A stretch of 23,197 nucleotides of DNA from Paramicrosporidium saccamoebae KSL3 (GCA_002794465.1 MTSL01000192.1:3510-26706), one strand, 5' to 3'; counted from the first letter of the stretch, positions 1,987 through 18,085 are shown. The notes: generated by a model not told the origin, from the sequence alone. Translations and numbers: made by a program.

Positions 1987-2636
1987 ATGCACGAACTGGT
2001 AGCCGTGGTGGACATTGCTGCTTGGAGGGGAACAGATGTCTGCAGTGAGCTCCAAAAGAAGGGCTGGTCCGTATCGAAATGTAGCGGAGCTCTGAGGGTA
2101 TATTGGGTGGGTTGGAGTAATGGATAGTCAGTATTTCTTCCCAAACACAAAATTTCCATTGTCACCAGCACACTTGAGCCCGAATGTGTAGAAAAGGCAA
2201 TTGAGCGGTAAACTCTCAGTGTGTCAGTTTGATGAATTGTAGTCGAGACATGATTCAAGAAAAGTGTGACAATGTTTACATTGTTCTAGCATTTGAAGAT
2301 CGAATCGACAACCTTTCAGCTGCTCTTAAAATGTGCGAGGGACGTGCATGTGTTGTCGATAGTGCCAAGCTCCTTGCTGATTTTGTTTGCAATGTTACCA
2401 AGAACGAGCCGCTATCAGACACAAAGGACACTGATTTCAAGAAATTAATTCAGATAATGTCTTGGCAGAGTGAAGGCCTAACCACGCTCCAAGTCGATCT
2501 CCTAGCATCGCATTATTCCTCTATTAAAGAGCTTGCCCATGCGGCCCGCCATATATCCAGCCAGCAGCCAGAACCACTTGTAGAGGCACTTTCTGCCATA
2601 TCCCAGTTCCTCGATCAAGACTACTACGTAGAATAA
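1987..2636 (+). CDS. Non-catalytic XPF/ERCC4-family subunit with HhH-like C-terminus (FAAP24/ERCC1/SPO16-like), 194 aa; introns 2098-2127 (30 nt) and 2208-2242 (35 nt)
   Basis: Two GTA...TAG introns join MHELVAVVDIAAWRGTDVCSELQKKGW to the 2229-2636 ORF in frame. AWRGTDVCSELQ recalls FAAP24 KWRGSQLAQEMQ, and LLASHYSSIKELAHA recalls FAAP24 LLQKFPSIQQLSNA and ERCC1 LLTTFGSLEQLIAA. Family call is from memory of those sequences. Confidence 0.55.
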
Positions 2637-2719
2637 ACATGATTGGCCGATGGCACGACGTATCCCATTGGCTTTTTACGCACACTTAAATGGTCCAGCG
2701 CAGGGCGATGTATCACATA

Positions 2720-3478
2720 ATGAGATTCTCACCACTCTGTGTAGTCTTACTACTACATGCGTCGGAGGGAGCAAAAAGTCCGGCGGAATGGGTCACGACA
2801 ATCCAAGAATTGAAGGACCCGGACATTCCGGATGGCATCCGCCTGGATCTTGATGGAATCCTGGTAAAGTTAAATAGAGTGTCGGAAGATGGATTCCCTC
2901 CGCCAGGAATCTTTTGTAGTCATCCGCCAGCAATTTTCAATGCATTTGATCCGCTATTGAATGTAAAACCTGTCGTATCTGCGCAAGGAAACATACCGCC
3001 CACTGCCCCTAAACCATCTGTGGGTAACGGACCACCATCCACGGGTAATGGGGTGCCGTCAGTAAATAATGGACCACCTCTGCCGCCATCTGGAGGACCT
3101 CCTCCGCCACCATCTGGAGGGCCACCTCCACCCCAAACTGGGGGACCACCTCCGCCGCCATCTGGAGGACCTCCCCCTCCTCGAACCGGAGGGCCGCCTC
3201 CACCGCCGTCTGGAGGACCACCACCCCCATCTACCACTAAACCTATAACGCCACAACAATATGCCGCCAAGAACGTCCAGCAAACGAAATCGCAACCAGT
3301 AGATTTACTTAAACAGATTCAAGGCGGGATGAAATTGAAAAAAACGGGGCAAGGTCTCGCTCCGAAGAGTCCCACGTCACAGAAAGATGTTCTTGTTCAG
3401 GCACTCGATAAAGTAATTGGCCCGCCAACTGATACAAAGGAAGACACGCTTACAGATACTGACGTATGGAGCGATTAG
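2720..3478 (+). CDS. Predicted secreted proline-rich protein with C-terminal WH2-central-acidic (WCA/VCA) module, 252 aa (in-frame Mets also at 2690 and 2708)
   Basis: Intronless ORF. N-terminus MRFSPLCVVLLLHASEG|A is signal-peptide-like. It has six PPPPP(S/T)GG-type repeats, the WH2 DLLKQIQGGMKLKKT (3302-3346), an amphipathic KDVLVQALDKV and the acidic tail DTKEDTLTDTDVWSD with Trp third from the end. Confidence 0.85.
   Translation: MRFSPLCVVLLLHASEGAKSPAEWVTTIQELKDPDIPDGIRLDLDGILVKLNRVSEDGFPPPGIFCSHPPAIFNAFDPLLNVKPVVSAQGNIPPTAPKPSVGNGPPSTGNGVPSVNNGPPLPPSGGPPPPPSGGPPPPQTGGPPPPPSGGPPPPRTGGPPPPPSGGPPPPSTTKPITPQQYAAKNVQQTKSQPVDLLKQIQGGMKLKKTGQGLAPKSPTSQKDVLVQALDKVIGPPTDTKEDTLTDTDVWSD
3074..3232 (+). 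repeat. 24-nt coding tandem repeat, 6 copies plus a partial copy (PPLPPSGG/PPPPPSGG/PPPPQTGG/PPPPPSGG/PPPPRTGG/PPPPPSGG/PPPPS)
   Basis: Read directly. Units vary mainly at third codon positions, consistent with selection on the peptide. Confidence 0.95.
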
Positions 3479-3524: not shown

Positions 3525-5009
3525 TCAATTGTTATTTGAGAACTTTAAAAAATCCCTAATTGATTTTTGTCCAGAATCCAAGGGCTGCGAGGAAGCCTTT
3601 CCGTGTTTTTTGCTTTTTGAATATGCCGTATAGGGGAGGGCGAGTTTTTCTGTGCTATATGCAAATGAACGTGCTTTTACCTGCAACGGTGGACAATTCT
3701 CCTGGCCCAATGAGGTGGAGAAGGAGCGTTTAAGCGAGACTCGCGCGGCGTTGATGGCGTCGGTGCGAAGATTGAGCGTCGAGTTTTTACCCTTGTCAAG
3801 ATGAATTTCAAAAGGCAAGACGACAGCTTCGGGCGGAGTGGGGGATTCAAAAATTACCTCGGGAACAGGATCAGCCCTTACAGGTGGCAATCGTCTAAAT
3901 GGTTCCAATGTGTTGGGACACAACTCTCCTTCACAAATTCCCTGTGCATGTGTGTCAGCCACCGGTGGACCCAAAAAACTCCACTGATCGCCGTGAAAAT
4001 CTTCTGCCTGAAGGGGGAGCGGGTTTAGGAAACAAATTCTCCTTTTCTCCCCGTCATACACTCTTTGATGAAGAAAGGTCATCTCCGCCTTGGCAAATTC
4101 CGACTCGTAATCAACGGGCATTTTTGTAGGCATTTCAGCCCTCAATACTTGCAAAACCTATGGAATGAATAAATTGGCAGATGGTACTCTGGAAATATTC
4201 TGGTACTTTGACAGATATTTGTAGGCAGTCTTCAAACCCATCCCGTGTATTGATGGCAAGTAGTCGCACCCCGACAGCATGCACATGTGACGAAACTACC
4301 ATATTAGGCAGAGCAAAGCTACGAACCTTTTGATAGGAAAACATGCTCAGATCCAGTTCGGTTGCGTCGGAAAGCCTGTCAATGCAAATCTCATCAGTGT
4401 TTCCGTCCTTGTCCAGTTTAAACAATACCCGCTTGCATCCAAATAACAGCAAATCAGAGTCCTCTGTAATCACAGCCGACACAGTTCCCATGAGACTCAA
4501 GTAGGCCATTTGCGCATCGGCCTCATACGGCGCCACCACGTAATCAATTCCTGTGCGTTTCAGCTCCTCGATCAGACGAGCGGCCATCCTCGGAGTGACG
4601 TCAACACTCTTTTGGATATGGATATAGGCGGCTGATGCATCGCCAGCGTCGATCAGTTGATGCGCCTTTAGTCGACTGTCTTTTCTCGTCTTTGAACGGA
4701 GCAATTCTTGATGTGACTTCATCGGGAGATGGGCACCATCAAATACCAAAATGGGACGCACATTATAATAAAGAAGAAGACGGACCTTGTTCATACAAAA
4801 TTCCACAAAACTACCAATCAGAAATCAATGTATCCGAATGAATACCTGTCATTTGAACGTCCGTGAAAATGGTCCACAGCACAAGAACCATACACTCCCT
4901 TGTGAAGCCACGAGTAGGCGTCTATGGCAACCGCCTGGCCAGCCAGTTGCTCCAAGTGCACACGTCTGGTGATCGACCGGAGCAATGGCAAGAGTCCATT
5001 AATACCCAT
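3525..5009 (-). CDS. EXO1: Exonuclease 1 (XPG/Rad2 family), 462 aa; introns 4811-4845 (35), 4296-4326 (31), 4158-4187 (30)
   Basis: [53 protein letters not shown], spliced [19 protein letters not shown] and FLHQRVYD. Splicing restores one frame. Confidence 0.95.
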
Positions 5010-5143: not shown

Positions 5144-6013
5144 TTAGTTTTGCTTCTTATCCTTGTTGACTGACAGAGCAACGGCTTCACGAAGCCCACG
5201 TAGACCAAAGATCAGAGTGGGCATGACCAGCACAGATCCTACTTTGATGGTTCTGAATGTGTCAAGAAAGATCCAGTTCGCAACGACTAGGCCCAACCAA
5301 GACAAAAAGAGCAAGTAAAAGAGTTTCTGACTGATTGTAAGTGAGAGTATCTTTTTTGCAGGCGATCCGAGAACACCGAGGCGATTCCAAGCGGTAAAGA
5401 GGTACACCAAGGGAAAGAGAGTGATTGCAGTAAACACGGCAGAAATGAGCAAGCCAGTGTCAGGTTTGATAACATTGGAGAAGGGAGGTCGGTTCTCTGG
5501 CTCCCTCTTTTCAAAGATATCCTCGAGCTGATCAGCAGTCCCCTTCTTGTCTCCACTTGCCACATTTGCTCCTGTGAAATCCACAATTCCCATATTCCAT
5601 TCAAACACCCGTGTCGTCGCGTCTGCCTTTTGCGACACAATGATCAGCTTTATTTCGTAGTTGGCAGCATCCAGCAAGGCGTCTTCGGCAGTGAATGTGA
5701 CGCGGCAGAGGTCGCTAGCATCTCGGCCACATAGAAGGGGAAAGTATCCGAAATGCTCCGCATCGGTGCGAGTGAGCACAAAGTTGCTTTGGACGAGCTG
5801 ACAATCGCCTTCCAAGGAAACGGAATACTTGATGGCATCATTTCCCAACACCCTGCGGGCTGGAAGTACTTCTGGATATTTGACTCTATCAGTCAGTTGC
5901 CACACTGAACATTACGACTCAATGGCATTACTGCCCACCCTGACACGCGCCTCTTTGATGGAACATCCAAACGCTGAGCCAGCCAGCGACAACAGTAGAG
6001 GGACGAGCCTCAT
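5144..6013 (-). CDS. SWP1: Oligosaccharyltransferase subunit Swp1/ribophorin II, 279 aa; intron 5886-5915 (30 nt)
   Basis: Spliced signal peptide MRLVPLLLSLAGSAFG. C-terminal ENRPP..SAVFTAITLFPLVYLFTAWNRLG and three hydrophobic helices ending G.RGLRE match the ribophorin II C-terminal pattern. Confidence 0.8.
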
Positions 6014-6111
6014 TACCACTCTACCACCCCTGAAAATGCTCGAATTAAACACTCAATGTTCTCAGGACTTTATAACCCATTCCGTTTATGTACATAATTG
6101 ATACAAGGACC

Positions 6112-6432
6112 CTACTTTTGCGGTGATCTTGGCTTCTTCTTCCTATCTCGGTCTACTCATTAGCCTCATTTTCTCATGTCATGTACCGTGGTTCTTAATT
6201 GCTGCGGCAAAAGACTCGATGACCTGCGACTCGTCTTCTGGTGGGGGCAGCTGTGAAAAGTGCTTCGAGAGCACTTCGGCCAGCTCGTGTTTGTTGGTTG
6301 TGGGCTTCATCCGCACGCGATGCGTCTTTTTGTACTTTCTCAGCGAAGACAGGGCCAATTTCGAAAAATCCACCTAGAATTAGCGTTCAAAATTGACTGT
6401 ACTTTGGGAGCGGCACCCTTCTTAGCATTCAT
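6112..6432 (-). CDS. SAP30: Minimal SAP30-like Sin3-binding protein, 85 aa; introns 6374-6402 (29) and 6153-6186 (34)
   Basis: VDFSKLALSSLRKYKK...KHELAEVLSKHF...ESQVIESF matches the SAP30 Sin3-binding domain pattern. Both introns have CTAAT branch motifs. The spliced end DRDRKKKPRSPQK is NLS-like. Confidence 0.75.
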
Positions 6433-17630: not shown

Positions 17631-18056
17631 TTACTGGGTGAGACACATGCACTTGGCCGGGTCGCCACTAGTGGCGTTGGTGGAGGTGACTAGTTGCTGC
17701 TCACCAGTCGCTGTGGTGACTGTAATGCACGGCTTGCCGTCATCCTTTGCAAGAGTAGACGGTTGTTGGGAAGGATTTGCGCCAGCTACTACCGCTGGAG
17801 CCTTAGTTGGGGCGTCTGCTACAATACTGTCCTTGGCCAATGACTGCGATTTTGGCGGCGATTGAGACTTGGACGGCGATGGCTGACTACCCGTTGCATT
17901 ATTCAATGGCGATGGATTGGCCTCTACTGTTTTGTTGACGGGTGCCGGACTGCTGGTGTCTGAACCTGTTGTGCCGGCACTGTCTGAAACTGACAGACTA
18001 GGCGAACCGGTTGAGGACGGTTTCTTCTTTCCTCCCTTTTTCTTGTTCTTGCTCAT
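17631..18056 (-). CDS. Orphan low-complexity protein, 141 aa, with polybasic N-terminus and C-terminal CxC-CaaX-like end (KCMCLTQ)
   Basis: Single ORF from MSKNKKKGGKKK with an S/T/P/A-rich body. It fills the slot between ECT1 and ATG27 and has a CAGCCAATCA box 30 nt upstream. Confidence 0.7.
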   Translation of the reverse strand: MSKNKKKGGKKKPSSTGSPSLSVSDSAGTTGSDTSSPAPVNKTVEANPSPLNNATGSQPSPSKSQSPPKSQSLAKDSIVADAPTKAPAVVAGANPSQQPSTLAKDDGKPCITVTTATGEQQLVTSTNATSGDPAKCMCLTQ

Positions 18057-18085
18057 CGTCCCCAAGTCAAGACAAGCCACACCAC

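Follow-up and report, generated by a model that had tools for sequence, protein, structure and literature searches.

A signal-like leader on a WASP-derived polyproline-WH2 protein of Paramicrosporidium saccamoebae, a parasite of amoeba nuclei

Results and Discussion

The gene and its product

We analysed a window of 23,197 nucleotides (the whole stretch of DNA under study), which represents positions 3510-26706 of contig MTSL01000192.1 in assembly GCA_002794465.1 of Paramicrosporidium saccamoebae, MTSL00000000 being the accession of the genome of this species, and focused on one gene that encodes a candidate actin-binding protein. P. saccamoebae belongs to Rozellomycota and is also described as a 'short-branch microsporidian'; it inhabits the nucleus of the amoeba Saccamoeba, which it infects by means of a polar filament and in which its growing stage is a naked protoplast (PMC5701793). 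The open reading frame (ORF) of the gene lies at 2690..3478 on the plus strand, the strand to which all features of the protein below refer, and encodes 262 aa from its first ATG. It is directly preceded by an in-frame TAA (2687-2689) and closed by a TAG (3476-3478), and its in-frame Met codons are at 2690, 2708 and 2720, the next one occurring only at about residue 205. The GenBank model (coding sequence 2708-3478, 256 aa, product P0001) has a single exon, in agreement with the intronless ORF described in a first-pass annotation of this DNA, whose start, Met 2720, is also where our residue numbering (1-252) begins. Taken by its sequence features, this is a lineage-specific single-exon gene, in which a leader of the endoplasmic reticulum (ER) type and an orphan domain are joined to what resembles the output half of WASP, with a decayed C-A tail.

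A WASP-type output half behind a signal-like leader

The WH2 actin-monomer-binding motif PVDLLKQIQGGMKLKKTG (3296..3349), which consists of an amphipathic helix followed by LKKT, is preceded by a linker of 17 residues and separated from a C-like helix by another of 12 residues. In the comparison with the Pfam profile PF02205, DLLKQIQGGMKLKKT gave a score of 17.2 bits (E = 0.004), with the curated cut-off being higher (23.1 bits). When the last 81 residues were compared with solved structures, the top matches were the N-WASP WH2-actin constructs 3m3n and 2vcp (E = 0.009). Furthermore, a VCA profile, which was built from 27 mostly amoebozoan WASPs (alignment A1) with their proline regions excluded, matched residues 199-235 of P0001 with p = 3.4e-6. 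A helix was also predicted at the WH2 position by AlphaFold2 from the single sequence, in a model with a mean predicted local distance difference test (pLDDT) score of 45.8. The predicted WH2 with its LKKT, as proposed in the first-pass annotation, can be regarded as real, being significant in three independent ways (Pfam, solved structures and the VCA profile).

Upstream of WH2 is a proline-rich region of 80 residues (3005..3244; 46% Pro and 21% Gly), which includes seven 8-residue units (3068-3235), the first reading NGPPLPPS and the other six GGPPPP[PQRS][ST]. The six GGPPPPP repeats noticed earlier are therefore present as six GGPPPP(P) units, accompanied by one degenerate NGPPLPP unit. 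At the nucleotide level, Tandem Repeats Finder reported a 24-nt unit in 6.3 copies (3071-3222). Pairwise differences among the seven units amounted to 24, 23 and 101 at codon positions 1, 2 and 3, respectively, the codon differences being synonymous in 75 cases and non-synonymous in 39, and this excess at the third position indicates that the plus frame is coding and that the repeat peptide is under purifying selection. A minus-strand ORF at 2920..3270 (116 aa) was rejected as a poly-Gly mirror of the proline repeats, the codon-position pattern favouring the plus frame. By their sequence type, the GGPPPP(P) units fit the profilin- or SH3-binding repeats known in WASPs and formins.

A full-length WASP profile aligned from the proline region through the terminal W-S with 37.8 bits (E = 2.2e-10 for a 3750-protein proteome). 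The layout of signal-like leader, N-terminal domain, proline repeats and WH2, the last parts being in WASP order at the extreme C-terminus, holds. The WH2 was the sole Pfam match at E<=1, in line with the reported absence of WH1, WHD and WAHD. Specifically, no match at this threshold was obtained for WH1 (PF00568) or for the N-terminal domains of SCAR/WAVE, WASH and WHAMM (WHD, WAHD1 and WMD), for which remote similarity below the threshold is possible. The GTPase-binding domain (GBD) was not detected with PF00786 or with a GBD profile from 27 WASPs, and the corresponding WAID profile gave only E = 0.12 with a negative score. From these features, we regard the product as derived from WASP, with polyproline and WH2 elements behind a signal-like leader.

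The leader, MRFSPLCVVLLLHASEG (2720..2770), was recognised by hydropathy and inspection. It has Arg2 in the n-region, a hydrophobic core, LCVVLLL, and S/G at -3/-1 before Ala18; if translation began at Met 2690, the n-region would be MVQRRAMYHIMR, with a charge of +3. The 7-residue Kyte-Doolittle peak of MRFSPLCVVLLLHASEG was 3.73, located at LCVVLLL. The leaders of ribophorin II/SWP1 (MRLVPLLLSLAGSAFG) and ATG27 (MRVHMQLLAVAACGVSA), both encoded in the same window, peaked lower, at 2.43 and 2.81, respectively; both proteins are bound to enter the ER. Among the N-termini of 21 complete canonical WASPs, the highest peak was 2.37, also below that of the leader. No second hydrophobic segment was seen in the protein, which argues against a membrane anchor or transmembrane segment and against a glycosylphosphatidylinositol signal. 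By inspection and hydropathy, the features of a classical Sec61 signal are thus present (a positive n-region, a hydrophobic core within the range of 7-15 residues, small uncharged residues at -3 and -1 and no downstream anchor). The signal-peptide-like start that had been suggested was borne out as a sequence feature, and a signal peptide at the N-terminus is a well-founded inference.

The gene model is consistent with this leader being part of the protein. An upstream exon that would replace the leader had been considered a possible complication, and none that is plausible was found; the upstream ORF is a separate gene, which is annotated as such at 2250-2636 (plus strand, 128 aa). Its fusion with the present gene by an intron was rejected: the in-frame GT..AG pairs (e.g., 2628-2698 and 2628-2767) are merely combinatorial, the candidate donors are unlike the six local donors, the upstream ORF ends naturally and the annotation keeps two genes. 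An intron within the leader was likewise rejected, as the only candidates measure 26-33 nt, compared with 49-83 nt for the introns that can be reconstructed from neighbouring models. With the upstream gene ending at 2636 and no plausible local intron, the start should lie within 2637-2720 and the leader should belong to the protein. Two ATGs are located between the upstream stop and the first ATG of the gene, one at 2639 (16 codons, in frame, its reading closed by the TAA at 2687) and the other at 2650 (67 codons, out of frame), which implies that the 5' untranslated region is very short or that the transcripts overlap.

Between the leader and the proline repeats lies the orphan region (residues 18-95, 78 aa; 2771..3004), which has a net charge of -4 and one Cys. 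It gave no Pfam match at E<=1, and an exhaustive phmmer search with the N-terminal 104 aa against 1.84 billion representative proteins returned only the protein itself and two artefactual matches to long repeat proteins, the scores of which were sums of chance matches. No relatives of the N-terminal region were found in metagenome contigs either. In the single-sequence AlphaFold2 model, the pLDDT of this region was below 50, and the model was unusable for a fold search. The unrecognised N-terminal domain, claimed earlier at about 70 aa, therefore stands, with a length of 78 aa. The possibility that it is a decayed WASP WAID was also considered, as its PAEW...ELKDP resembled PAEW/PPEW...E[IL][EK]D of P0002 and P0004, and was rejected, because CRIB and WAID profiles from 27 WASPs gave no match and BLASTP was non-significant. 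P0004 itself, a WASP-like JGI metagenome protein of 301 aa, has an unusual architecture for a WASP: CRIB and proline repeats are followed by an SMN/Tudor-type domain (PF06003), which is inserted ahead of a degenerate WH2 and a Trp-containing acidic tail.

Neighbouring genes and other observations in the window

The upstream gene (ORF 2229-2636, plus strand) gave no Pfam match. Its 128-aa product weakly matched the isochorismatase-like 'MAR1' structure 1x9g (residues 99-163 of 200, E = 0.083), so that the ORF has the look of a naturally ending C-terminal half from a different, isochorismatase-like protein; the N-terminal half may be encoded by an exon that the annotation lacks, within the 290 nt separating this gene from ATG9. 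On the downstream side, the neighbour is an EXO1-like gene on the opposite strand, ending at 3525. The GC content at third codon positions was 0.38 in the gene of interest (0.42 without the repeats) and 0.43-0.62 in its neighbours, a difference that is not decisive for horizontal transfer.

Elsewhere in the window, the GenBank model at 5144-6432 (minus strand, 325 aa) joins SAP30_Sin3_bdg and Ribophorin_II_C through a 282-nt intron, compared with 49-83 nt nearby, and the separate ribophorin II/SWP1 leader mentioned above (ORF 5912..6052, minus strand) sits inside this 'intron'; the model probably merges two genes. In addition, a 153-aa ORF at 17631-18092 (minus strand) is of low complexity and rich in Ser, Thr and Pro, with a Lys-rich N-terminal patch and a CaaX-like prenylation box at its end (CMCLTQ).

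Proposed export towards host actin

We consider export towards host actin to be the best single explanation for this combination of features, with a probability of roughly 0.45. The leader would route the protein into the secretory pathway and, with no membrane anchor to retain it, the wall-less intracellular stage would release it into the intranuclear compartment of the host. In the host, WH2 would bind G-actin, and the proline units would bind profilin-actin or SH3 proteins; these binding steps are drawn from the established biochemistry of WH2 and polyproline, our own results bearing on the identity of the motifs. Acting in this way, the protein would either sequester monomeric actin or supply it to filaments locally. 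Export is favoured because a module for actin and profilin would be useless in the ER lumen and because the parasite lies naked in its host. The orphan status of the gene also counts for export, being typical of fast-evolving exported parasite proteins.

The host itself may have been the model or the source for the module. The protein ends with WSD (3467-3475), and a WS[DE] ending was found in 14 of 25 mostly amoebozoan WASP tails, although this is a short signal that was noticed post hoc. The homology search returned mostly amoebozoan WASPs, and P0002, the closest non-self match, groups among amoebozoan WASPs, including those of dictyostelids. Given that the host is also an amoebozoan, the module could conceivably mimic a host-type one or have been captured from the host, and the match of both the GGPPPP repeats and the WSD ending to mostly amoebozoan WASPs is compatible with a module that imitates, or was taken from, host WASP. 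In a bolder form of the proposal, which we regard as doubtful, the wall-less stage would export a WH1-less, regulator-free polyproline-WH2-CA protein directly into the amoeba nucleus, where nuclear actin would be built through its recruitment of profilin-actin and Arp2/3 of the host. If true, such actin might serve, for example, nuclear enlargement, parasite positioning or spore release, and the protein would be without precedent among eukaryotic intracellular parasites as a secreted actin assembly factor of the WASP type. In the literature searched, there was no paper linking microsporidia with a secreted WH2 actin protein in this sense.

Several observations weigh against export. The mature part of the protein has one unpaired Cys and no N-glycosylation sequon. 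To our knowledge, every characterised eukaryotic polyproline-WH2 protein is cytosolic. A search for homologues in which the leader and a WH2-C-A module are conserved together, an approach suggested in the first-pass annotation, yielded no orthologue: the word-indexed search with the full-length protein was swamped by polyproline and gave only weak WASP-like matches, homology search with the C-terminus alone found nothing, and two metagenome scans found no relatives. Consequently, no evidence was obtained that the leader and WH2 are conserved together. Further points of this kind come from the C-terminal tail, from the actin machinery of the parasite and from the existence of WASP relatives that lack WH1, as described below.

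The C-like amphipathic helix DVLVQALDKVIGP (3386..3424), a low-confidence predicted helix with L-x3-L-x3-I spacing, is followed by a weakly acidic, Thr-rich tail, PTDTKEDTLTDTDVWSD (3425..3475), with 6 acidic residues, a net charge of -5 and Trp at -3. Within the WASP family, no part is better conserved than the C element, which is defined by three large hydrophobic residues spaced by three, a Lys/Arg doublet or triplet and then a hydrophobic residue (PMC3298513). The present helix has this spacing, whereas GPP takes the place of the basic cluster, so that the caveat attached to the initial proposal of a C helix, the lack of Arg/Lys after it, proved correct; a Lys/Arg doublet follows the C helix in 21 of 25 WASP tails. 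A profile covering only the C and A elements (CA) gave a score of -0.2; when the last 45 residues were shuffled 5000 times with their composition preserved, 857 of the shuffles (17%) scored as well. Moreover, the 6 acidic residues within the last 17 equal the minimum among 25 WASPs, for which the median is 11. In a post-hoc motif test, for which we required Trp in the last four residues, at least three acidic residues before it and C-like spacing upstream, the C-like spacing and the A-like end occurred in the right order in 0.3% of shuffles, and the A-like end alone in 1.6%.

Thus, of the C-A elements that had been put forward, KDVLVQALDKV is present with the proper spacing but is not beyond chance by profile and lacks the basic cluster, and the acidic tail DTDVWSD is present with Trp at -3 but belongs to a CA region that is not significant by profile and has an acidic count equal to the lowest among the 25 WASPs. 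In sum, the polyproline and WH2 elements stand firmly, and the CA region is recognisable by its position but degenerate. With the basic cluster missing and the acidic stretch thin, activation of Arp2/3 by this tail is possible but probably weak. C and A should have been retained by a mimic that acts on a conserved host complex, so their degeneration weakens the case for a strong mimic; an essential endogenous activator is likewise made less likely, provided that the tail has not diverged together with an undetected ARPC1.

These results bear directly on the proposal that the protein is a full Arp2/3 nucleation-promoting mimic, which would work through a functional W-C-A module in the manner of ActA, RickA, BimA and P78/83. 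Here the W, C-like and A-like elements do follow one another at the very C-terminal end with the canonical order and spacing, Trp is at -3, the WSD ending matches 14 of 25 WASPs that are mostly from Amoebozoa, the host's lineage, and the Thr-rich tail could gain charge through phosphorylation. Nevertheless, the CA profile was not significant, no basic cluster is present and the acidic residues number no more than the family minimum; furthermore, full mimicry, being a subset of the export explanation, depends on all the steps of the latter. We therefore judge full mimicry to be rather unlikely.

That the protein is instead a secreted structural component of spore wall or polar filament, comparable to PTP1, with an irrelevant resemblance to WH2 and CA, seems very improbable, although the leader, the composition of the whole protein (22% Pro and 11% Gly) and the central repeats would all suit such a role. 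The species does have a polar filament, yet a profile search by the authors of the genome study found no polar filament proteins (PMC5701793). The WH2 match is far beyond chance, and the repeats are of the GGPPPP(P) profilin-binding type of WASPs. In addition, polar tube proteins rely on disulfides, whereas the mature part of the present protein contains only one Cys.

The parasite's own actin machinery

In classical microsporidia, Arp2/3 has disappeared together with every WASP protein (PMC3298513). For P. saccamoebae, we consulted the Par_sa column of the presence/absence matrix in Supplementary Data 4 of Torruella et al. 2018 (PMC6299283), in which ARPC2, ARPC3, ARPC4, profilin, cofilin and WASP are each scored 1, and ARPC1, ARPC5 and verprolin are each scored 0. 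This pattern suggests a partly reduced or divergent Arp2/3 system, between those of Rozella and classical microsporidia. Because P. saccamoebae keeps ARPC2/3/4, profilin and cofilin, an endogenous target for the protein exists. The single WASP-profile match in Par_sa may moreover be the present gene, since a generic WASP profile detects it at E = 2.2e-10. Rozella has WASP and SCAR, and metchnikovellids keep Las17/WAS homologues with WH1, CRIB and WH2; as these lineages bracket P. saccamoebae, a canonical WASP copy is expected there, and the present gene may be an extra copy. Two NCBI-sourced candidates for a canonical P. saccamoebae WASP among the relatives of P0002, P0027 and P0012, were discarded, as they belong to other assemblies.

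A close rival to export, which we hold to be quite possible though less probable, is that the protein is an actin regulator of the parasite itself, namely a reduced WASP/Las17 derivative that has lost WH1 and CRIB and acts in the parasite cytoplasm or at a parasite membrane, partnered by endogenous profilin, actin and Arp2/3. The hydrophobic N-terminus would then be a membrane-associating helix or a chance feature and not a cleaved signal. The matrix discussed above fits this explanation (PMC6299283): the partners are there, exactly one WASP-profile match was recorded, which is possibly this gene, and verprolin, the partner of WH1, and ARPC1, the contact of CA, are both scored 0, as would fit a co-loss of WH1 and a co-divergence of CA. 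WH1-less relatives of WASP, WAWH and WAML, are also known, and they occur in Amoebozoa, the lineage of the host (Kollmar et al. 2012, PMC3298513), so that the absence of WH1 is not unprecedented. On the other hand, the leader is stronger than ER leaders of the same genome and unlike any of the WASP N-termini compared, an essential activator should have kept the C element, which is degenerate here, and the WH1-bearing WASPs of Rozella and metchnikovellids lead one to expect a canonical copy in this species as well. Even if the leader were inactive, the gene would remain informative as a minimal WASP without WH1 or CRIB and with a decayed CA, belonging to a parasite that has gone only some of the way towards the Arp2/3 loss of classical microsporidia.

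Comparison with known systems

The protein shares with WASP, N-WASP and Las17 the order of a GGPPPP(P) proline region, WH2, an amphipathic helix and an end, here weakly acidic, with Trp at -3. It differs from them in having no WH1, basic region, CRIB or WAID, in the lack of a Lys/Arg cluster in its C element and the thinness of its A element, and in its hydrophobic N-terminus, which was seen in none of the 21 WASPs compared. By sequence, it resembles the output half of WASP and, compared with full members of the WASP family, lacks WH1, GBD and the basic part of C. WAWH and WAML likewise have a WASP-type output module without WH1, but WAWH retains the GTPase-binding domain and WAML has IMD and WAID, none of which is detectable here, and neither has been described with a signal peptide; assignment to WAWH was rejected for this lack of a GBD.

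Verprolin/WIP proteins are similarly proline-rich and have a WH2 with a GMKLKK-type core, and the WH2 described here presumably resembles that of yeast Vrp1, a likeness that we take as a lead only. However, their WH2 is N-terminal, with a long proline region next to it and a WASP-binding segment at the C-terminus, whereas the C-terminus of the present protein is WASP-like; assignment to verprolin was therefore rejected, the domain order being reversed. Microsporidian PTP1 has in common with it a signal-type leader, high proline content, central tandem repeats and an organism with a polar filament, but the present protein is distinguished by repeats of the WASP/formin-like type, a significant WH2 and the single Cys in its mature part, and the authors of the genome study detected no similarity in sequence (PMC5701793).

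Listeria ActA, Rickettsia RickA, Burkholderia BimA and baculovirus P78/83 are pathogen mimics that promote actin nucleation, and ActA and BimA start with export signals. These proteins combine proline repeats with WASP-like elements that bind actin or Arp2/3 and are exposed to the host cytoplasm or nucleus, as is proposed here; the likeness lies in the functional idea. They differ in being bacterial or viral, with well-kept residues for Arp2/3 contact, whereas the present protein is eukaryotic and, by its predicted features, soluble and without an anchor, and its CA is degenerate. There are few natural probes of Arp2/3-dependent actin in the host nucleus. If the leader works, this gene would provide a eukaryote-to-eukaryote case of the actin hijacking known from bacteria and baculoviruses, in the lineage leading to microsporidia and inside the nucleus of the host.

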